Under the pieces are notes generated by a model. It made no database searches, had not been told where the DNA came from, and saw only the letters and a program-made list of their open reading frames with translations. A DNA stretch of 64,000 nt from the IMG/VR virus record IMGVR_UViG_3300046616_000314, positions 62,001 to 126,000 of that record, one strand, 5' to 3'. Made by a program: the position numbers and the translations under genes. Below are positions 7,292-46,230 of this stretch, piece after piece. Position 1 is the stretch's first letter. The number at the start of each line of letters is the position of its first letter.

Positions 7292-7527
7292 GACCAATCC
7301 CGCGCCATATTCTGTACGTGGATCGGGACAAATCAATTGATCCCGCGACCGGGGTGTTTTTGCCTGAATTCTATAAGTTCATGACGGACCAATATGGAAC
7401 AGCGAGTGGGGCATGGGCACGAGATTATATGTATTATTCTCGCACCGGGGATAACAATAAAATTGTGATCTTCATCTTTAAGGAAGACCCGGAATTCGCA
7501 ATGATGTTTAAGTTGAAATACGGATGA
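7288..7527 (+). CDS. FKLK-motif family protein
   Basis: FKEDPEFAMMFKLKYG*; ATGA overlap. Confidence 0.8.
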   Translation: MRPIPRHILYVDRDKSIDPATGVFLPEFYKFMTDQYGTASGAWARDYMYYSRTGDNNKIVIFIFKEDPEFAMMFKLKYG

Positions 7528-7901
7528 AAAGTCTCTTCGAAGCTATGCGCGAACGCGGATATGAGCCAACCGAAGCTTGTTGTGGTCCTATCCCGCGCGA
7601 CGCGCATGACGCATTTCTATATGAGCGAGTGTATGTCAAAGAAGCTGGTGGACCCCGATCCGTTACGGGTGATCGTGTCTCCCGTTCCAGTGAAGATATT
7701 TTCGATAATCATTGGCTGATAGTTGCATTTGACCAACCAGTCGCCATGAAAAGCGAACGATGGATTCAATGGATTGATTTGATCCAACAAGAGAAATATC
7801 AACCCTTTTTCTTTGATATGCGCAATCAGGCGAAGACAGTCCTCGCCTTTGGCTTTGCTGACGAAGAAGATGCAGTTCTAATGCGGTTGAAAATGCTATG
7901 A
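7524..7901 (+). CDS. FKLK-motif family protein
   Basis: FADEEDAVLMRLKML*; ATGA overlap. Confidence 0.8.
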   Translation: MKSLFEAMRERGYEPTEACCGPIPRDAHDAFLYERVYVKEAGGPRSVTGDRVSRSSEDIFDNHWLIVAFDQPVAMKSERWIQWIDLIQQEKYQPFFFDMRNQAKTVLAFGFADEEDAVLMRLKML

Positions 7902-8206
7902 AGGGTCATCGTATCTATTTCCCAATGAATGCCGGTGGATGCTGGCAGTATTTGGACCCTAGCCTTAGAAATCTAGAATTCACGTCGCCGGGAGCCGATA
8001 CTATTCCCGAGAACGCCGCCATCCTAACCTTTTCTAATTTCGGTACGCAACCGGATGACAGTAAAGAGAATATACGATGGAACGAATTCATGCGATTACA
8101 GGCATCGGGGCATAACGCATGGTTCATTTCGTTTGACACGCCGACGTTTGCTCTAGAGTTTGAAACCGAAGAAGAAGCTTTCAAGTTCAAGTTGAAATTC
8201 GGATGA
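7898..8206 (+). CDS. FKLK-motif family protein
   Basis: FETEEEAFKFKLKFG*; ATGA overlap. Confidence 0.8.
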   Translation: MKGHRIYFPMNAGGCWQYLDPSLRNLEFTSPGADTIPENAAILTFSNFGTQPDDSKENIRWNEFMRLQASGHNAWFISFDTPTFALEFETEEEAFKFKLKFG

Positions 8207-8616
8207 GCCTGCAACATTTTCGGTCTGACGTTAACAAAGAGGTTTTCTTTCTGGAAACCAAGTGGGTAGGGCAAACTGCCACTACCTACGTTATTTCTAT
8301 GGATGACCATGGGAACCGGAGATATTACGCGGTTGTTCCGTTAGAAGATGTAAAAGCACTTGCTAAAACCGATCTGCATTACCACGTTCGGAAAGATTTC
8401 GCAGTCAACGTCAAGATTCCTGTTCCCGAACATAGGGAGACAGGGGTGACGACTTATAGCTTGCTCGCGCCCCATATGTCATGGATCGCCCATAACGTGA
8501 AAACAAAATGGTCGATGACCACTCCGTTTGCCAATAAAAACGTCATGGCTATCAACATGACCTTTTACTTTGGTGACGAAATCGAGGCGGCTGCGTTCAA
8601 GCTGAAATTCGTATGA
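8203..8616 (+). CDS. FKLK-motif family protein
   Basis: FGDEIEAAAFKLKFV*; ATGA overlap. Confidence 0.8.
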   Translation: MSLQHFRSDVNKEVFFLETKWVGQTATTYVISMDDHGNRRYYAVVPLEDVKALAKTDLHYHVRKDFAVNVKIPVPEHRETGVTTYSLLAPHMSWIAHNVKTKWSMTTPFANKNVMAINMTFYFGDEIEAAAFKLKFV

Positions 8617-8945
8617 TTTTGATGGATGTATTAGAAGGCGTTTCGCGCGGAGAAATTCGCGCCCTTGGTCTCATTGAAGAGGATGATGGGCAAGTTCGGT
8701 GTGATTTTTTGAATTACACTCAAAAACTTGACCCATTGCATATAACGACCGATGGTTTCTTCTTAGTGTTAAGCAACGGCGATGATGGATTGTGTACGGG
8801 CACACGTTGGAGTAACATCATTGCGTTTTGTCATTCGTTCAGAGGCAAGATGTATCAATCTAATGACCGAAGAGACCAAGTGTATATAATCTTCGACATG
8901 CCTTCAGAAGAAGAAGCTATGCTATTGAAGTTGAGACTCGGATGA
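8613..8945 (+). CDS. FKLK-motif family protein
   Basis: MPSEEEAMLLKLRLG*; ATGA overlap. Confidence 0.8.
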   Translation: MILMDVLEGVSRGEIRALGLIEEDDGQVRCDFLNYTQKLDPLHITTDGFFLVLSNGDDGLCTGTRWSNIIAFCHSFRGKMYQSNDRRDQVYIIFDMPSEEEAMLLKLRLG

Positions 8946-9292
8946 AACTCGTTGACGCAGTTCCGCATATGTCGCGATACCGGCACGTATTTCCTATGGG
9001 GCGAACACCGGGTAAATTTTTTCTCCTCCATAAGGACAAAGAAGAAAAAATCTCCAATACAATTCACTGGGACAAGGTACGTAAAATCACGGGCAAGCGT
9101 TGGGTGATTTTCGAGTTTGAAAACCGAAACAATTACTTAAAAAATCATTGGTCAGAATTCTCCCGGTATTGTAAGAGCCGGGCTCAGGCTGGTTACATGA
9201 TTGTGGATCGCTATGGAAATAATGTAACGATTGCATTGAATTTCCGCGCGGACGAAGATGCGTCCTATTGCAGATTGAGATTCAGCAAATGA
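8942..9292 (+). CDS. FKLK-motif family protein
   Basis: FRADEDASYCRLRFSK*; ATGA overlap. Confidence 0.75.
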   Translation: MKLVDAVPHMSRYRHVFPMGRTPGKFFLLHKDKEEKISNTIHWDKVRKITGKRWVIFEFENRNNYLKNHWSEFSRYCKSRAQAGYMIVDRYGNNVTIALNFRADEDASYCRLRFSK

Positions 9293-9618
9293 TCCAGCTA
9301 CGCCCCAACGAATTAATTACCGGGTTGATCATCGAAATCGCGTATTACTCGCGGGCAGATGGTACAAAGTACATTCGATATTCGAGTGTGCTAAATTCTA
9401 GAGGCGGACACGATAGACAAGAACTTACTCTATGTAGTCCGTTTGTTGTAAGCATAAAAAATAACAGACACATTGTTGATGATCCGCGTTTTATTGACTT
9501 TGTTGACAAGTTCACCGGAACTGTTGTATATAAGGACTCGACAGATGAAATCTTCATGGATTTTGCAAGTGAAGAAGACATCGTAATGTTCAAGTTTAAA
9601 ATGACAGGGCAATGCTAG
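9289..9618 (+). CDS. FKLK-motif family protein
   Basis: FASEEDIVMFKFKM; start moved to the ATGA overlap at 9289. Confidence 0.75.
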   Translation: MIQLRPNELITGLIIEIAYYSRADGTKYIRYSSVLNSRGGHDRQELTLCSPFVVSIKNNRHIVDDPRFIDFVDKFTGTVVYKDSTDEIFMDFASEEDIVMFKFKMTGQC

Positions 9619-9977
9619 AAGCGCAGCGCATAACAGTACCGACGACAATCCTAGCATATCGTCTATCACCTTGGACGACAGGGTTTTCGCTCACCTATGC
9701 TCAGCGCGATTCTAACCGCAATGGTGTACCCTGCGAAGTCATGGGCGCACACCTAGTCATTTTCCCGATGAAGATACTTTCGGAGATCAAACCGGAGTAT
9801 GAAAAATTTGTCGAGTTTTCGAAAACGTTTCCCGGTGAGATTTATTCGATCAAGCGGTTCTTCACACATGACCTTTCGCCTGGACGTGGCGAGCATATGC
9901 ATTTCTTGCTTTCATTCCCGACCGCTGAAGATGCCGTAATCTTCAAGATGCGTATGAAAGTGGATTACAACCTATGA
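9612..9977 (+). CDS. FKLK-motif family protein
   Basis: FPTAEDAVIFKMRM. Confidence 0.75.
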   Translation: MLEAQRITVPTTILAYRLSPWTTGFSLTYAQRDSNRNGVPCEVMGAHLVIFPMKILSEIKPEYEKFVEFSKTFPGEIYSIKRFFTHDLSPGRGEHMHFLLSFPTAEDAVIFKMRMKVDYNL

Positions 9978-10264
9978 ACGGCGCGGATGAAGTATACGCG
10001 GGTTATGTGGTCGAAATCTCAGATGACGAAATCAGCTATAAACTTAATGCACGCGGAAAGCAAATGCATGTGAGTTATCCATGCAATGAATGCGCCGTTC
10101 TGCGTCTTGATAAATCAACCGCATTGGGAGATTTGGACGTTACAGATTTCAGAAAAACTATGCAAACAATCTCAAGGAAAGCTACGGTATTCTTTGGCGG
10201 ATCATATGTTTTTCATTTCAAGAACCCAGATGATCTTATCCTGCATTGTCTGAAATACTCATGA
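9974..10264 (+). CDS. FKLK-motif family protein (divergent)
   Basis: FKNPDDLILHCLKYS*; ATGA overlap. Confidence 0.7.
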   Translation: MNGADEVYAGYVVEISDDEISYKLNARGKQMHVSYPCNECAVLRLDKSTALGDLDVTDFRKTMQTISRKATVFFGGSYVFHFKNPDDLILHCLKYS

Positions 10265-10641
10265 AACAAGTTACAGCTAAAATCATGAAACTTAGCGAAT
10301 TTGTTGCTCTACACAATCCGCGAGTTTGCGACGGCACGGTGGATTGCTATATCGATGAAGCAACGACTTGTGAGGACGAAGACCCGCGCAACTATTCCTG
10401 TGAACCCATTGCCGATGACGATCTTGAACTAATTGAATATCCTTGTTACACCGCGCATCATTTCACGCATTCTGAAATCTATAGCGACCGCTGGAACAGT
10501 GTGTTCAAAGCCGTCAAGGTGCATAAACTTCCGGCGTATTTTGTGGATTACCATCTAGGCGGTGTTCCCATAGAATCGTGCATTATCTTGGCGCACAAAA
10601 GCGACGAAGATGGCATGTTGTTTAAATTGAAACTCACATGA
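10261..10641 (+). CDS. FKLK-motif family protein
   Basis: HKSDEDGMLFKLKLT*; start moved to the ATGA overlap. Confidence 0.75.
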   Translation: MKQVTAKIMKLSEFVALHNPRVCDGTVDCYIDEATTCEDEDPRNYSCEPIADDDLELIEYPCYTAHHFTHSEIYSDRWNSVFKAVKVHKLPAYFVDYHLGGVPIESCIILAHKSDEDGMLFKLKLT

Positions 10642-10946
10642 CTGTTCACAAAGGCTGGAAAGTCACCATTGAACCGACCGATGTCGCCGGGATCGAATGG
10701 GAAGCGCATCGTTATGGTGGTCCGCAAATAATCACGGGTGATTGCTTGTATACACCCATTTTTGACGTGAGAGATATAACGCGATGGAATGCATTTTTGA
10801 ATTTTGCTCATACCTATGAGAGAACAATTTGGCAAATTGCGCGGGATCATGGTGAAGCCCCCGATACCTATTATGCTCCTGTTGGCTATGTGATCGATTT
10901 CGCTTCTGAAGAAGAAGCGTTGTTGTATAAGTTGAAACACGAATGA
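10638..10946 (+). CDS. FKLK-motif family protein
   Basis: FASEEEALLYKLKHE*. Confidence 0.8.
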   Translation: MTVHKGWKVTIEPTDVAGIEWEAHRYGGPQIITGDCLYTPIFDVRDITRWNAFLNFAHTYERTIWQIARDHGEAPDTYYAPVGYVIDFASEEEALLYKLKHE

Positions 10947-11425
10947 TCCCTGTATTTGACAACGACAGTCTCAAGCCAGATATCACGCGCTTCGTAATAG
11001 AGAAGACGAACCTTCCTGCACGTCATAACAGTGCAGTCGTATATGTCTTAAATCAAGTGGACTATTCCCCTGGCATATATTCTTTAGATCAGCAAACGTC
11101 TAAGATTGAATTCTTTCGCGTTGGCGTAATCAAACACACGAATATGAAGAAATTCCAATCAATGGAATTCGATACGGATGTTGCTGGACAACATGAAGTA
11201 GAACTATTCAACAAAGAATTAACAGCACTCGACGCAAGCTATCATCACCCCGTGAATATTGGAATAATGACCAATTGGCGATCTGAAGTCATAAACTGGA
11301 TCATCGAAAACATTGACGGTGCTTGGACGCTTATGTCACTTCTGCATGAGAATCGGAAATGGGGTTGCACTTTTTATTTTGCATCTGACGAAGATGCGGC
11401 TACAATAAAATTTAAGTTTGGTTAA
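10943..11425 (+). CDS. FKLK-motif family protein
   Basis: FYFASDEDAATIKFKFG*. Confidence 0.8.
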   Translation: MIPVFDNDSLKPDITRFVIEKTNLPARHNSAVVYVLNQVDYSPGIYSLDQQTSKIEFFRVGVIKHTNMKKFQSMEFDTDVAGQHEVELFNKELTALDASYHHPVNIGIMTNWRSEVINWIIENIDGAWTLMSLLHENRKWGCTFYFASDEDAATIKFKFG

Positions 11426-11888
11426 AGCGTATTTTTACGAGATTTTTATGAAGCCCAGTCATGCTCTCATTGGTGGTGAATTAATTCCAATTCAATTTTA
11501 TGAACTGGAAAGCCCCAATCAATTCGGAACCTATCTTGTCCCATTCGCCAAAGCGTTGTTGGTCGAACAGACCCCGTGTCTGAACGTGTACGACATCAAG
11601 GGCACGAAGTTCCTTGTGCTTGCTGGATCGGCGCCAGAGACCCCGTTCAACGTCATCGTAGCCGAATTCAACGAGCGTGGTTTCGATCTGGGTTTGGAAA
11701 TCCCTAGCGTTGAAACGCGCAACATTCTGTCGATGTTCACACTGTTGGAAGTCGATGACGCTTTTGAAGTAGAATTCTACGAAGAAGAGGTTATCCTGTC
11801 GAGCATGGGCGATATCGTCATGGAAGATGTCAGAATCGCCATTGAATGTGATTCCGATCCATACTTCACGGATGAGCCGCCATTTTGA
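11418..11888 (+). CDS. Hypothetical acidic protein
   Basis: ORF fills the gap in a coupled operon; no FKLK motif; start uncertain. Confidence 0.65.
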   Translation: MVKAYFYEIFMKPSHALIGGELIPIQFYELESPNQFGTYLVPFAKALLVEQTPCLNVYDIKGTKFLVLAGSAPETPFNVIVAEFNERGFDLGLEIPSVETRNILSMFTLLEVDDAFEVEFYEEEVILSSMGDIVMEDVRIAIECDSDPYFTDEPPF

Positions 11889-12253
11889 TCCTCGCTGATT
11901 ATATCAAAAAGCATTTCGCGGATGGATATAATAGTCTCAAGGTAGGGACTACGACTGATCCTGCGTTGATTATTGAACACGGAAATAAATGGTGTTACAA
12001 CGTCGATAACGACGCAGATGCGGATTTTCAGAAAGCCGCTTACTATTCGCATTACTGCTTTCCAAGCGGGACAGTTTTCAATGATCAATGGAAGCGATTG
12101 TATGAATACATCGTTGCCCGAGACATTGAAATATTTTTCATTAGAGTCCACGATTACTACGCTACAATTAATAACCCTCGACAAATATCAGTAGTTGTCA
12201 TTCCGCACGATACAGAAGAAGAGGCGGTATTTGCTAAGGTAAAGGTCGGATGA
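11885..12253 (+). CDS. FKLK-motif family protein (PHDTEEEA subfamily)
   Basis: PHDTEEEAVFAKVKVG*; close paralog of the next gene. Confidence 0.75.
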   Translation: MILADYIKKHFADGYNSLKVGTTTDPALIIEHGNKWCYNVDNDADADFQKAAYYSHYCFPSGTVFNDQWKRLYEYIVARDIEIFFIRVHDYYATINNPRQISVVVIPHDTEEEAVFAKVKVG

Positions 12254-12615
12254 TCCTTACTGAATACATCGATACCATCATGTACGATTACAACAGCATC
12301 AGGGAAGGGAGACCGGACGACCCGTTTTCAATGCCATCGGTGTCAAATATAATTTACCGCTATACCAAAACACATATTAATCCCGACACCGTAGATCATG
12401 CCTGTTATTCCCATTATGTTTTCCAGTCTGGAACGCTAAGAGGCTCCCGATGGGAACGACTACATTCGTATGTTTTAGGAAGAAAATCTAAAATATATTT
12501 TATTACTCGCTATGCTTCCGACGTTAATTTCATACACTATCAACAAGAAGCCGTTATCATCGTTCCACACGATACGGAAGAAGAAGCATTCTTCGCTAGA
12601 GTTAAAAACGGATGA
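12250..12615 (+). CDS. FKLK-motif family protein (PHDTEEEA subfamily)
   Basis: PHDTEEEAFFARVKNG*. Confidence 0.75.
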   Translation: MILTEYIDTIMYDYNSIREGRPDDPFSMPSVSNIIYRYTKTHINPDTVDHACYSHYVFQSGTLRGSRWERLHSYVLGRKSKIYFITRYASDVNFIHYQQEAVIIVPHDTEEEAFFARVKNG

Positions 12616-13313
12616 TCTACCATCTTGAACCCATCGGTGATTGGTCTACGGTAGCTGATGAAGATCGCTTTAGCGGTTTTCTAGACGGCGACCGCCGAGC
12701 ACTACATAATCCAAAGTGGCGCGGAAACGTGCGCGATGCTTTCCGTAATACATCGCACCAATACAATTTCTTTTTCCTTCAAGACGTAAAAGATCGTCGT
12801 TCAACGTACACGGCTAAATCTCTATTTGAAGTGAGTGATTACCTTCTTGACTATACATTCGATATGTCAGTACCAGACTCAATCAACGTGGTGTTCACGA
12901 ACAATTTCGGTACTGATCGCGTCGCAATGACACCCTGGATCATTGCTCATAGAACGTCGCACACAATCCACGAACACTTGGATGATGGCAAGGGTGTAGA
13001 ATACGTTCAAATATTACACGATATGTGTATTCATATCAAAAATATCAATAATTGCCATCATCGATTGAATAAAGACTTGCGCCAAGTCTTGAAATTCCGC
13101 AGCGCAAAGAAACAGCTTACGCGATATGGCGAATTGTTTCATGAAATATTCGCTCAATACTTGATACAAGGAAGCGTGACATTCATCAAACTCCCAAACA
13201 CCGTTCCTGATGCGGATGTAATCAATTCGATTACTAGAAAATATGCACCGAAGATCAATGCCTCTATCAAGAGACTATTAGATCAATCTGTTGGTAACAT
13301 TTATATTCTTTAG
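12612..13313 (+). CDS. Hypothetical protein with atypical zincin-like motif
   Basis: MTPWIIAHRTSH and ELFHEIFAQYL. Confidence 0.6.
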   Translation: MIYHLEPIGDWSTVADEDRFSGFLDGDRRALHNPKWRGNVRDAFRNTSHQYNFFFLQDVKDRRSTYTAKSLFEVSDYLLDYTFDMSVPDSINVVFTNNFGTDRVAMTPWIIAHRTSHTIHEHLDDGKGVEYVQILHDMCIHIKNINNCHHRLNKDLRQVLKFRSAKKQLTRYGELFHEIFAQYLIQGSVTFIKLPNTVPDADVINSITRKYAPKINASIKRLLDQSVGNIYIL

Positions 13314-32789: not shown

Positions 32790-33010
32790 AGCGAAATCTC
32801 TTCGTCTTTGATATCGAACATGGCGGCGCGAATAGAATCGATTGCCGCGAGCCGATATTGTTTCTTGTTATAGACTGACGCATCGCGCCACGAACAAATG
32901 TGTCGTGATCGATTGTATTCGATGCTGGCTTGCGCTTGGCTCTCATACAGAGCAATCGCCACTAACTCGATTTCGGCAATCGAAATCTCACCAATACCGT
33001 CAATGATCAT
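32786..33010 (-). CDS. Hypothetical protein
   Basis: Coupled ORF. Confidence 0.55.
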   Translation of the reverse strand: MIIDGIGEISIAEIELVAIALYESQAQASIEYNRSRHICSWRDASVYNKKQYRLAAIDSIRAAMFDIKDEEISL

Positions 33011-33198
33011 TGTGCCACCGGGTGAATGACGCCCATCAGAACGAGCGAGACGTAGATGAAACGTAGGGCGATGAACGCAACGCCGCTGAAGGCGATGATC
33101 TTCAGATAGAAAACACCGGTTTCAAGCACGCCTTTCCCAAATTCCTTGAGATAGCCTTTGGGAGGCGTGGGTTGCTTGTATTCAGGACCATCGATCAT
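33007..33198 (-). CDS. Small membrane protein
   Basis: C-terminal hydrophobic helix; ATGA overlap. Confidence 0.55.
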   Translation of the reverse strand: MIDGPEYKQPTPPKGYLKEFGKGVLETGVFYLKIIAFSGVAFIALRFIYVSLVLMGVIHPVAQ

Positions 33199-42544: not shown

Positions 42545-42581
42545 GCGACGAATTTATAATTTTTAAATTGCGTTGGCAAGG

Positions 42582-42587
42582 TAAATA
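42582..42587 (+). promoter_or_regulatory. TAAATA late-type promoter element upstream of the release factor gene
   Basis: TAAATA 36 nt upstream of the ATG, then a GGATA/TATCC hairpin and SD AAGGAG. Confidence 0.55.
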
Positions 42588-42623
42588 GGCGTAGGATACA
42601 TTTCTATCCAAAGGAGAAAGACG

Positions 42624-43325
42624 ATGAAAAATATCATCGAAATTCGCTCCGCTGAAGGCGGGGCTGATTCAGCACTGTTCACAAAAGACCTTCTCAACGC
42701 ATATGTGCGTCTGTTCAACCGCAAGGGTTGAAAGTACCGCATCGTTCGTGAGAGACCGAGTGATGCAGGTTATAGCGAAATCGCCATCGAAGTTTCTGGC
42801 GATGATCTCACACCACTAAAAAATGAAGCCGGTGGACACCGAGTCCAGCGCGTGCCCGAAACGGAAGCCCGTGGGCGTGTTCACACGTCTACGGTAACTT
42901 GTGCCGTCTTAGATGTAGAAACTACAACGGACACCGATTCGATCTACTCGAAACGTAATCCCGATGATTTTGCCTATCGTTGGTATTCTGGCACAGGTAA
43001 AGGCGGACAAAAAAGAAACAAATCGCAATCGTGCTTAGAGCTAACTCATATTCCAAGTGGGTTATCTCAACAATCGCACGGTCGGTCACGGGAAGTGAAT
43101 TCTACACAAGCCATGACTGCCCTGATCGCAGATTTGGATTCCATGGCAAAAAACGCCAAAGCATCAATTGTTGCGGAAGATCGCAAAGGTCAAATCGGAT
43201 CGGGTATGCGCGGTGATAAACGCCGCACGTATCGTTTCCAAGATGGAACAATTACCGATCACGTCACCGGGCGTACTATTACAACGAAGGCATTTTCTAA
43301 GGGTAACTTAGACCTTCTTTGGTAA
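42624..43325 (+). CDS. prfA: Class I peptide chain release factor (RF1-like, no N-terminal domain 1) with in-frame UGA at codon 36 (42729-42731)
   Basis: ATG 42624 with SD; IEIRSAEGGADSALF..NRKG*KYRIV..NEAGGHRVQRVPETEARGRVHTS (PxT motif)..GTGKGGQ..RRTYRF..ITDH, all in one frame. Confidence 0.85.
42736..42770 (+). promoter_or_regulatory. Hairpin immediately 3' of the in-frame UGA (candidate readthrough stimulator)
   Basis: ACC-GCATC-GTTCG..CGAGT-GATGC-A-GGT: 13 pairs including two G-U, with one bulge. Confidence 0.5.
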
Positions 43326-43991
43326 TCGTCCCATGATCCATCCACTAGCGAGATAACTTTCCAACTCGCTAGTGGATACCATCATCGATTTCGTTTGGTT
43401 GTTTATCCATTTGCGTCCTGCATTGAAGGCGGGTTTTCCAAAATTAAAATGGGATGAACCAGATAGTTTTCGACTATGCGTGGCTCGCCATTCTGGTGGA
43501 TGAATTTTTCCGAACATCGGATTTTTATCACCCGTAAACCTGCCCTTTTTGCTTTGGGACATTTTATCACGAGATTCAGTAGAATGTGACTTTCCATACA
43601 TATGATGGTGGGTTCCACTGATTTTGCTTAAGCTATCAGAAGAATGTTTCTTACCGTAAAAGGGATTGTTTTTACCCATTGTAGATTTTTTTGCGGTATT
43701 GATAAATCTATCATATGCTCTAGCAGTAGGAGCATTTTCTTTCATACGACATAGCGCGTAGAACATTTTCGAACGAGCTTGTGGATTTTTTAATTTAGTC
43801 AGCAATACGTGTGCAATATAATGCTCTCTGGTCGTAAGATACACTAAGTTGTCTTTAGTATTAGGACCACCAAGGCTTTTTGGAATTATGTGATGGCGTT
43901 CTAAACCAGGAGCTTTAACCCGGTCCAATCGAATTGCATTATCTATAATTTTAGTATAGAGTTTTTTATACTTTATTTTTAGCCAAATCAT
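43308..43991 (-). CDS. HNH homing endonuclease with NUMOD3 DNA-binding repeats
   Basis: ERHHIIPKSLGG..DNLV.LT.REHYIAH; NPFYGKKHS, HMYGKSHS, NPMFGKIH repeats. Confidence 0.9.
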   Translation of the reverse strand: MIWLKIKYKKLYTKIIDNAIRLDRVKAPGLERHHIIPKSLGGPNTKDNLVYLTTREHYIAHVLLTKLKNPQARSKMFYALCRMKENAPTARAYDRFINTAKKSTMGKNNPFYGKKHSSDSLSKISGTHHHMYGKSHSTESRDKMSQSKKGRFTGDKNPMFGKIHPPEWRATHSRKLSGSSHFNFGKPAFNAGRKWINNQTKSMMVSTSELESYLASGWIMGRLPKKV

Positions 43992-44643: not shown

Positions 44644-46230
44644 ATGCGCTATCGTGACCTTCTCAAAGAATCTCCCCAGACTGGTTTTAAGCCCGGCTTT
44701 GAGCAATGGTTCGCGGGTTCTAAAGTCGTAGACAAATCCGGTCAGCCTTTGGTTTGCTATCACGGTACGTTCAGAGATTTTGCGGAATTCCAATATAACG
44801 ACAACGGTTGGGCGGGCTCTGGCTTCAATCGTCTAGGGTTCTGGTTCGATACCGATCCCAAGACCCCAGGCTGGCTTGCGGGCGACGAAGAGGGCTATGG
44901 CATCGGAGACGGTGGAAACATCAAGCCTTGCTATCTGTCGATCAAAAAACCTCTCGTCATGTCGGGTGACATGATCTGGAACGAGGACTTGGACGAGCTT
45001 CGTCAGCTTCGTAAAAATGTTTCAGCAACGTATGCGGCGCGGCGCGCAGCCAAGAACGGTGATTGGAACTTCGGACAATTAGACCTAACCTATCGCGATG
45101 CGTCGAGAGCATTTGACGCGGCTATGGAAAAGATGATGCAGAATGACGGTTGGACCCGGATCATGCGTCTTCTTCCGAACGGCATTAAGTCAACTACTGA
45201 GGAAGTCGCTGCGTTCCAGGCTGAATGCATCGCCGAAGGTTACGACGGTATTCATTTCGTGGATACGATGGCTGACTCAGGAACCCGTGACTATGCGCCT
45301 ACTGATTGGTGGTTGGCATTCCATCCAAATCAAATCAAGTCAGTCTTCGCTTCACAATTCAATCCACAGTCCACCAACATGAGCGAAGCTCAAGAGTTGG
45401 ATGAAATCATGGAAATCCCTGATTTTGACGATGACATCAACAATCAACGTCGTTCGCTGAATTGGGGAGAAAAAATTAAAGATTCCAAGAAAGTTGGAAA
45501 GATCGGACCCTATAATTTGGTCGTTCATCGCAGTGCTTGGGGTGATGAATATCTTTTGCTAGATAATCAGAAACACCCAATGGGCAAGGCGACTGTCTCA
45601 AAATATTCAGGTGGCTTCTATCGCGTCGGACACATTTGGTTTGATCCGACCGTCCGAGGCAAGGGCTACGGCTATTTGTTCTATCGTTTTCTGATCGACA
45701 AAGGCATGAAAGTCATCACTGACACCGATCAAACACGGTTCAGCCGAGGCGTGTGGTCTAAGCTGGCGCGCGAAGGTTTCGTGTATGAATATTTTGAAGA
45801 TGATACGCTAGGGTCCAAGGTTACGGACACCCAGGATTTCTACGGCAATCGTCTATCTAGATTGGCGGCTGTTAAGCCCGGCACGGTCAAAGAGAGTGCG
45901 CTTGTTGAGAAGACGATCTTCATTCCAGACTCATCGGGTATGAATTTCGTGGTAATGAAAAATCCGTCGAAGGCACAATATTTTAAATTGCTGCATCCCG
46001 ACTCAGACCTGAAGGGTTTGATTTCGGGCAAGGATTTCTATGTGTGGGCAGCATATCACGCTCACCATGGGCAGATTGCGCACGGGTTGGGTCTAGGCGA
46101 GGATGCGTATCGTATCTTTGTTCGATACAACGCGATCCTCGCTCATCCATCGTTGTTCCCGGCTATTCGAGATAATCCGCAGATGAAATATCTATATGGT
46201 CCGTCTGGACCGAATCTAGAAAGCGAGTAA
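44644..46230 (+). CDS. Polyvalent protein: ART-PolyVal-like ADP-ribosyltransferase + GNAT acetyltransferase + unknown domain
   Basis: WFAGSKVVDKSGQPLVCYHGT..GFWF..CYLSIKKP..GYDGI..AFHPNQIKS; GHIWFDPTVRGKGYG..TDTDQT..GVWSKL. Confidence 0.75.
   Translation: MRYRDLLKESPQTGFKPGFEQWFAGSKVVDKSGQPLVCYHGTFRDFAEFQYNDNGWAGSGFNRLGFWFDTDPKTPGWLAGDEEGYGIGDGGNIKPCYLSIKKPLVMSGDMIWNEDLDELRQLRKNVSATYAARRAAKNGDWNFGQLDLTYRDASRAFDAAMEKMMQNDGWTRIMRLLPNGIKSTTEEVAAFQAECIAEGYDGIHFVDTMADSGTRDYAPTDWWLAFHPNQIKSVFASQFNPQSTNMSEAQELDEIMEIPDFDDDINNQRRSLNWGEKIKDSKKVGKIGPYNLVVHRSAWGDEYLLLDNQKHPMGKATVSKYSGGFYRVGHIWFDPTVRGKGYGYLFYRFLIDKGMKVITDTDQTRFSRGVWSKLAREGFVYEYFEDDTLGSKVTDTQDFYGNRLSRLAAVKPGTVKESALVEKTIFIPDSSGMNFVVMKNPSKAQYFKLLHPDSDLKGLISGKDFYVWAAYHAHHGQIAHGLGLGEDAYRIFVRYNAILAHPSLFPAIRDNPQMKYLYGPSGPNLESE

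Follow-up and report, generated by a model that had tools for sequence, protein, structure and literature searches.

The question raised by this locus is whether a UGA codon that interrupts a phage release factor (RF) gene is an error, a sign of gene decay or of a changed genetic code, or a control element. The stretch of DNA analysed, called the window here, comprises 64 kb and corresponds to positions 62001-126000 of the 561,116-bp IMG/VR contig IMGVR_UViG_3300046616_000314; its content, including ribonucleotide reductase genes, a DprA-like gene, an HNH-NUMOD3 endonuclease gene, and many unknown ORFs, fits a huge phage. The gene at window positions 42624-43325 encodes a 233-codon RF1-like protein that lacks domain 1, with a TGA at codon 36, where canonical RF1 has Trp. 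An earlier note, based on the sequence alone, had described the Shine-Dalgarno (SD) motif, the start codon, the 35 codons of RF homology (MKNIIEIRSAEGGADSALF...), the in-frame TGA, and the continuation of the same frame through PET and GGQ to a TAA, and every one of these sequence observations was confirmed. Pfam PCRF matched profile positions 102-134 before the stop and 136-193 after it, followed by the RF-1 domain; the TGA therefore stands for exactly one residue of the domain. The features of the gene are listed in the table.

Table. Features of the interrupted release factor gene and its surroundings (window coordinates).
Position	Strand	Feature	Observation
42573-42602	+	Sigma-70-like promoter match (TTGGCA, 18 nt, TACATT) upstream of the gene	Consensus match only
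42611-42616	+	Shine-Dalgarno AAGGAG, 7 nt before the ATG	SD-like motif upstream of the codon -35 start in 120 of 141 relatives
42624-42728	+	ORF part 1, ATG at 42624; 35 codons encoding the N-terminal strand and helix alpha5 of RF domain 2	Mean information by codon position across 141 relatives 1.15 / 1.36 / 0.42, the pattern of purifying selection on a translated frame
42651-42668	+	AEGGAD	Helix tip that reads the stop codon's U1 in RF1
42726-42734	+	Immediate context GGT TGA AAG	Family consensus GGY UGA A, +4 never U; synonymous-codon bias on both sides
42729-42731	+	In-frame TGA at codon 36, the recoding site	Position of the conserved Trp of RF1
42732-43322	+	ORF part 2; 197 codons covering the rest of domain 2/4 and domain 3	Same frame as part 1
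42737-42768	+	Candidate stimulatory hairpin starting 5 nt after the TGA; 5' arm 42737-42744, 3' arm 42761-42768	Conserved with covariation in the window's own subgroup only
42855-42863	+	PET	Domain 2/4
42882-42893	+	HTST	Domain 2/4
43002-43010	+	GGQ	Domain 3
43323-43325	+	True terminator TAA	TAA in 127 of 139 relatives

The assignment of the product to the RF1 type, which the note had also made, held. NCBIfam prfA was the best match, and both the window piece and its relatives were placed on the RF1 models from about position 107 of 347 onwards, with scores of 155-202 bits, far below the equivalog cut-offs of 400 and 423 because the first 100 residues (domain 1, the RF3/stalk-binding domain) are missing; RF2 models scored lower still. 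The absence of domain 1 was not recognised in the note. The best PDB sequence matches were RF1 chains, at E = 4e-31 against 6e-19 for RF2. The RF1-type decoding loop of the window reads QRVPETEARGRVHTST, and a PxT tripeptide is present in 128 of 141 genes (PPT in 123; PET only in the window), PxN occurs in 10, and GGQ is conserved. From the established roles of these motifs, the factor is predicted to read UAA and UAG and, lacking domain 1, to act without RF3, although peptide release was not assayed. An AF2 model of an uninterrupted relative (the ORF of locus L091), built from an alignment in which the N- and C-pieces of interrupted genes were kept as separate rows, had a pLDDT of 91.2 and superposed on ribosome-bound RF1 at TM 0.83-0.87 and rmsd 2.4-3.0 Å, with RF2 ranking below. 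In this model, the residue equivalent to codon 36 lies at the junction of helix alpha5 and the next strand.

Membership in PrfH (RF-H), the RtcB-paired release factor homologue that likewise lacks domain 1 and keeps a decoding-like domain and GGQ (PMC1586002; PMC6514570), was rejected. The PrfH model (TIGR03072) scored 36-49 bits against a cut-off of 166.65, the fold match to PrfH was only rank 50 with TM 0.63, the window protein keeps the RF1 PxT loop, no RtcB domain was found in the 10 flanking ORFs scanned (about 3 kb on each side), and no recoding is described for prfH. The domain composition is the same as that of engineered E. coli RF1/RF2 lacking domain 1 (Mora et al. 2003, cited in PMC6514570); these laboratory constructs reportedly still release peptides at stop codons in vitro but no longer respond to RF3, which is a lead for the predicted RF3 independence and not evidence for it. 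Among GenBank phages, no DNA match was found and protein matches reached at most 41% identity; of two huge-phage hits examined, LR745208 is a different RF-like form without the PxT loop, and LR745206 shows only a 138-aa GGQ-domain ORF whose nature was not resolved.

A sequencing error, a recent nonsense mutation, or a decaying pseudogene would be the simplest explanation, since a single base separates TGA from TGG and gene callers report only a truncated 157-aa ORF. The note had named conservation of the TGA in homologous phage genes as the way to examine its reading, and TGG in relatives or pseudogene decay as the outcomes that would overturn it; the TGA proved to be conserved, and neither of those outcomes was found. 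A protein search with the post-stop piece returned many relatives at 50-62% identity, most of them 177-194 residues long and starting at varied codons shortly after the position of the stop. A minority of 222-232 residues show Trp at codon 36, but the two longer entries that were inspected come from short contigs, have TGA in their DNA, and were called with code 4, so their Trp is not independent evidence. At the DNA level, 79 of the 80 closest viral loci have TGA at codon 36, and the 80th, locus L042, has TGG there and a TGA four codons later, at codon 40. The same TGA occurs in 10 loci from bacterial genomes, including the isolates Thalassospira xianhensis (MCCC 1A02616) and Jiella and a Kiloniella MAG. 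In an independent set of 80 metagenome loci chosen with the C-terminal piece only, all 74 evaluable loci have TGA as the first in-frame upstream stop, 70 of these have the conserved N-peptide directly upstream in frame 0, and none is uninterrupted. In total, the TGA is present in more than 150 diverged relatives from independent samples, far more than expected by chance, and 141 distinct gene sequences were obtained, in most of which SD and ATG lie exactly 35 codons upstream. Sequencing reads and transcripts of the window's own copy were not examined; with both halves under purifying selection and no other stops or frameshifts, the error or pseudogene explanation is nevertheless refuted by the comparative data. 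That the gene belongs to a large family was not recognised in the note.

A genome-wide or late-gene reassignment of TGA to Trp (code 4), as in Jade phages, was also judged very unlikely, although only the 64-kb window of the 561-kb contig was analysed for it. In a greedy ORF set, TGA is the commonest stop in the window, ending 56 of 114 ORFs, 36 of them in ATGA start-stop overlaps, and TGG makes up 1.69% of codons. ORF statistics under TGA, TAG, and TAA recoding showed no gain specific to TGA. The only other place in the window where a TGA extension was not covered by another ORF (32871-33194, minus strand) holds five stops; the RF gene is thus the single exception in 64 kb. All 293 other Trp codons in the family genes are TGG. 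ARAGORN found no tRNA in the window, and none of 951 tRNAs in relatives' loci has anticodon UCA; only the 64-kb window of the 561-kb contig was scanned, so a dedicated UGA-reading tRNA elsewhere in this genome is not excluded. Jade phages do encode an RF1, proposed to favour UAA/UAG termination (preprint 10.1101/2021.08.26.457843), but their "code change module" is written in standard code and sits with a tRNA(UCA) and TrpRS in a phage whose lysis genes contain in-frame TGA, whereas here TGA is the main stop and only the RF gene itself carries the in-frame TGA. Selenocysteine insertion directed by the downstream hairpin is equally doubtful: uninterrupted homologues have Trp, Tyr, or Leu at the site and never Cys, most of the family lacks the hairpin, and no tRNA labelled selenocysteine was listed for 45 loci, although selB was not searched.

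Selection acts on the nucleotides and not only on the protein. Third codon positions around the site are close to random, indicating deep divergence, while the A of TGA is invariant. The flanks of the stop are biased beyond what the protein requires: Gly at -1 is GGY in 92% against 66% gene-wide, Lys at +1 is AAG in 97% against 42%, and Thr at +1 is ACT in 84% against 26%. The p-values for this bias ignore the relatedness of the sequences, but the effects are large. The +4 base is A in 113, C in 21, G in 7, and U in 0 of 141 genes, whereas 28 of the window's 56 ordinary TGA stops are followed by T; +4 U is reported to reduce readthrough in bacteria (PMC5289835). Production of two separate polypeptides, a 35-residue peptide and a C-terminal protein made by reinitiation, was considered because gene callers find start codons downstream, for example GTG at 42852. 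This reading is very unlikely, since the downstream starts lie at different places in different relatives, there is no in-frame ATG, GTG, or TTG between 42732 and 42851, the two parts are always in the same frame in the readthrough clade, and the first 35 residues supply the first strand and alpha5 of the decoding domain in the model, so that a product starting after the stop would lack them.

No RNA structure is shared by the whole family: RNAalifold on 38 mixed and on 93 short-form sequences predicted no pairs downstream of the UGA, so any stimulator beyond the local context is restricted to a subgroup. The window's own subgroup, which has the K.R[IV]VRERPSDAG segment after the stop, carries the 8-bp hairpin listed in the table. 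In 14 sequences, 96.4% of cells pair, against 27-48% when the 3' arm is slid, two pairs covary (CG/AU/UA/UG and GC/AU), and none of 500 shuffles reaches the observed covariation; with 14 related sequences, the evidence is moderate. The spacing is inferred to put the stem at the mRNA entrance of a ribosome that holds the UGA in its A site, where recoding stimulators usually lie. Other long-form members have a hairpin in a shifted register. An upstream hairpin predicted for the window, which would place the UGA in its 3' arm (42714-42732), is not conserved: only 51% of cells pair across 141 genes, no better than shifted registers, and 424 of 500 permutations do as well.

A tree of the post-site part, with 149 rows and rooted on two full-length phage RF1 genes, separated two clades. 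Clade A (support 99) holds all codon-36 readthrough genes, three separately nested genes with TGG at codon 36 and TGA at codon 40 (L042 among them), and one frameshift form. Clade B (support 84), the sister clade, is mostly from Myxococcota, including the isolates Nannocystis exedens DSM 71 and Minicystis rosea DSM 24000, which carry the +1 frameshift form. Here the N and C parts are in frames 0 and +1 and are joined at an SD-like GGAGG or GGGGG followed by CTT TGA C or CTT TAG C, which is the prfB cassette (motif as described in PMC3711429) at the same place in the protein. The tree holds 31 TGA and 12 TAG genes of this kind, with sister pairs that differ only in this codon (loci L161/L140 and L136/L139), and TAA never occurs. 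A subgroup has its site about 12 codons further on, where it is either a frameshift (four loci) or an in-frame TGA (four loci). Recoding has been lost only twice, in three loci with Tyr (L091 among them) and in one with Leu at the Trp position. A stop codon near the start of the gene is thus the conserved feature, while the means of escape and the exact site are interchangeable, and this is the strongest argument that the stop is a control element.

These findings bear on a further possibility, that the stop is a plain attenuator that keeps a potentially harmful extra release factor at a few per cent of the mRNA's translation and has no sensing role. Overexpression of RF1 or RF2 lowers fitness in B. 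subtilis (PMC12421855), and the leaky context would give a low, fairly constant yield. However, a weak SD or promoter would achieve the same, yet a stop is kept in essentially every member, has been re-created at codons 40 and about 50, and is replaced by a stop-dependent +1 frameshift site in the sister clade, and TAA, the most efficient stop, is never used at the site. This explanation was considered unlikely.

The best reading, held with somewhat better than even confidence, is programmed UGA readthrough, probably inserting Trp, that ties synthesis of a spare RF1-type factor to failure of RF2-dependent termination. In E. coli, UGA is read through at 2-4%, as set by competition between the Trp-tRNATrp ternary complex and RF2 helped by RF3, and extra tRNATrp raises the level (PMC10570021). 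In the proposed mechanism, ribosomes that terminate at codon 36 through host RF2 and RF3 would make only a 35-residue peptide, whereas those on which Trp-tRNATrp (anticodon CCA, near-cognate for UGA) wins would insert Trp and complete the 233-residue factor. Output would rise when UGA termination is slow relative to tRNATrp decoding, as when RF2 or RF3 is limiting or trapped or when phage tRNATrp is abundant. The product would add RF3-independent UAA/UAG termination capacity, and taking over UAA codons would free RF2 and close a negative feedback loop. What the analysis itself establishes is that the stop is real, in frame, gene-specific, and conserved under selection, that its flanks carry a nucleotide-level signal, and that the protein is RF1-like with intact decoding and catalytic motifs; the insertion of Trp, the setting of yield by RF2 level, the reading of UAA/UAG, and the homeostatic loop are inferences, and neither a readthrough product nor the inserted residue was sought experimentally.

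The interpretation offered in the note was partly supported. Its core, a programmed readthrough switch, is strongly supported by the conservation of the TGA. That full-length protein is made when RF2 activity is low is a reasonable inference from the E. coli competition, but nothing in this analysis tests it. The note had further proposed cross-regulation rather than autoregulation, unless the factor also reads UGA. With a PxT motif the factor is not expected to read UGA, so classic prfB-style autoregulation does not apply directly; yet the sister clade swaps TGA and TAG freely with the same PPT motif, which fits a general termination-efficiency sensor better than a specific RF2 sensor. The logic is thus neither simply cross-regulation nor simply autoregulation, and, as codon specificity was not measured, whether the sensor stop is one that the encoded factor itself reads was left undecided by these observations. 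The note's suggestion that a TAAATA upstream indicates late expression is not supported: this motif lies in the spacer of the sigma-70-like promoter match, and the T4-type motif TATAAATA occurs once in 64 kb, which is chance level.

An alternative is a timing switch in which the UGA is decoded efficiently only once the phage expresses its own UGA-reading tRNA, either a suppressor tRNA(UCA) or a tRNATrp(CCA) whose anticodon stem is unpaired at 27:43, so that the stop sets when the factor appears and does not sense RF2. In many relatives, the RF gene sits inside tRNA arrays, next to a phage tmRNA. Ten of 32 distinct tRNATrp(CCA) genes in RF-bearing loci have an unpaired 27:43 pair, against 98 of 807 (12%) other tRNAs (Fisher p = 0.0045), and seven of the ten are C27.U43, which corresponds to the G43U variant said to mediate UGA readthrough in E. 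coli (PMC13092985). On the other hand, the window has no tRNA, although the tRNA set of the rest of the 561-kb contig was not surveyed, its closest huge-phage relatives (four loci) have none or one unrelated tRNA near the gene, two thirds of the co-located tRNATrp genes have normal stems, and bacterial-chromosome and plasmid members keep the TGA without any tRNA array. In addition, a strong UGA reader would damage a phage that ends half of its genes in TGA. This switch is possible but was considered unlikely.

Among known systems, prfB (RF2), with its autoregulatory +1 programmed frameshift at CUU UGA C, is similar in that a class-I release factor gene carries an early in-frame stop codon that must be bypassed, so that yield depends on termination efficiency. 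In the window, however, both parts are in one frame and the frameshift cassette is absent, the factor is of RF1 type, and the site lies in domain 2 (codon 36 of a protein without domain 1) and not at codon 26 of domain 1; the sister clade also uses TAG, which was never seen in 8,164 prfB motifs (PMC12421855). The Mimivirus/Megavirus class-I release factor gene is translated past internal stop codons by one readthrough and one frameshift, interpreted as autoregulation (PMC3521657), but that factor is of the eukaryotic/archaeal eRF1 type in a virus of amoebae, whereas this one is a bacterial RF1-type protein in a phage, has one recoding event, and is part of a family spread over phages, plasmids, and bacteria. 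The leaky UGA of the RNA phage Qbeta coat gene is read at a low level by normal tRNATrp and yields the A1 readthrough protein, a C-terminally extended structural protein made as a minor product. Here the readthrough product would be the only functional product, the stop sits at a Trp codon inside a domain, and the gene encodes a termination factor.

A 2016 recoding review states that the readthrough arrangement is unknown for RF2 and RF1 genes, and a 2025 survey found no programmed recoding in prfA and no TAG in the prfB motif (PMC12421855). A 2019 survey of release-factor evolution discusses PrfH and ArfB as the other bacterial RF-type hydrolases besides RF1 and RF2 and contains neither the word "phage" nor "frameshift," and the GeneTack analysis discusses only prfB among release factor genes. 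No description of this family or its recoding was found in the literature, although papers behind subscriptions were outside the search and a prior description is not fully excluded. It is about as likely as not that the gene is one member of a widespread and so far unrecognised class of spare release factors in huge phages, plasmids, and bacteria, whose synthesis would be switched on by failure of normal termination, sensed through an early stop codon escaped either by UGA readthrough or by a prfB-like +1 frameshift at UGA or UAG. That would be the first natural case of the readthrough-type control of a bacterial-type RF gene that was predicted before RF genes were sequenced, as well as the first programmed frameshift in an RF1-type gene, including at UAG, and the family would supply both cases missing from the 2025 survey. 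It also points to a way for huge phages to add termination capacity only when host termination falters, which bears on how phages with tRNA and tmRNA islands take over translation. The short GGY UGA A cassette, with or without the hairpin, is a natural and compact candidate reporter of RF2/RF3 activity.

A search of the window against Rfam gave no hit at gathering thresholds. The neighbours of the Thalassospira copy, examined for signs of a prophage, are mostly unknown genes plus an AbiEii domain and did not inform on this point. The recoding also affects annotation: gene callers truncate these genes or translate them with the wrong code on short contigs, and RefSeq splits a Variovorax member into a "hypothetical protein" and a "peptide chain release factor-like protein."

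Recoding sites of a second type were found in the sister clade of short RF1-type genes (loci L104-L161, including L112, L127, L146 from Nannocystis exedens, and L131 from Minicystis rosea). In these genes, the N and C parts were in frames 0 and +1 and were joined at an SD-like motif plus CTT TGA C or CTT TAG C, which is a prfB-like +1 frameshift cassette in an RF1-type gene; TAG was used in about a quarter of cases, and TAA was never used. In some members, the in-frame TGA itself had moved. In three loci, L042, L205, and L234, it was at codon 40, in the context GAT or CGT followed by TGA CTA/CTG, with TGG restored at codon 36, whereas in a proteobacterial and plasmid subgroup, L101, L103/L166, L110, and L111, it was at about codon 47-50 and was preceded by Gly, Ser, or Ala. 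Database proteins that show Trp at codon 36 are code-4 translations of TGA on short contigs (L164 and L165), and the Variovorax member is split in RefSeq into a 56-aa “hypothetical protein” and a 172-aa “peptide chain release factor-like protein.”

In many large-phage relatives, the RF gene was located in a tRNA array, directly beside a permuted phage tmRNA gene; these loci included L011, L013, L015, L023, L027, L030, L031, L040, and L043, all within 2.5 kb of the RF gene except L013, at about 8 kb. Eight tRNAs with anticodon CUA and one with UUA occurred in RF-bearing loci, and none had UCA. In addition, phage tRNATrp(CCA) genes near the RF gene often had an unpaired 27:43 pair, mostly C27.U43, giving a 4-bp anticodon stem. 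This was the case for 10 of 32 such genes (in loci L021, L042, L062, L037, L053, L064, L204, L019, L191, and L222), compared with 12% of the other tRNAs in the same loci.

In bacterial replicons, the family was found among accessory or defense-type genes: an AbiEii domain lies near the Thalassospira copy (L084), and RAMP, Cas6, and HipA genes flank the copy on the Bosea plasmid (L167). A different short RF form was present in a published huge-phage genome (LR745208, a 485-kb uncultured phage; L249), in which a 197-aa RF-like ORF has a shortened decoding loop that lacks PxT (QRTSNGRIHSS).

Within the window, a run of about 17 small ORFs (96-233 aa) was chained mostly by 4-nt ATGA overlaps; only the last of these was tested, and it had no PHROG match. 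An HNH plus NUMOD3 homing-endonuclease-like gene converges on the RF gene, with the two 3' ends overlapping by 18 nt, and a perfect 12-bp inverted repeat with a 12-nt loop lies just inside it. Farther along, 1.3 kb downstream of the RF gene, is a gene encoding a 528-aa protein with an N-terminal ART-PolyVal ADP-ribosyltransferase domain (E = 3e-19).

Coordinates of the loci and window features, with strand where recorded
Sequence	Position	Strand	Feature
L112	1132-1792		frameshift-type RF1-like gene
L127	10001-10658		frameshift-type RF1-like gene
L042	10106-10123		relocated in-frame TGA
L021; L042; L062	9718-9791; 17175-17249; 561-635		tRNATrp(CCA), 27:43 unpaired
L164, L165; L166	152-838, 75-752; 3788-4492		code-4 database proteins; member split in RefSeq
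L084; L167	14248-15186; 936-3572 and 5269-6558		accessory or defense-type surroundings
L249	1114-1707		RF-like ORF lacking PxT
Window	7524-13313	+	run of small ORFs
Window	12612-13313	+	last ORF of the run
Window	43308-43991	-	HNH plus NUMOD3 gene
Window	43341-43376		inverted repeat
Window	44644-46230	+	ART-PolyVal protein gene
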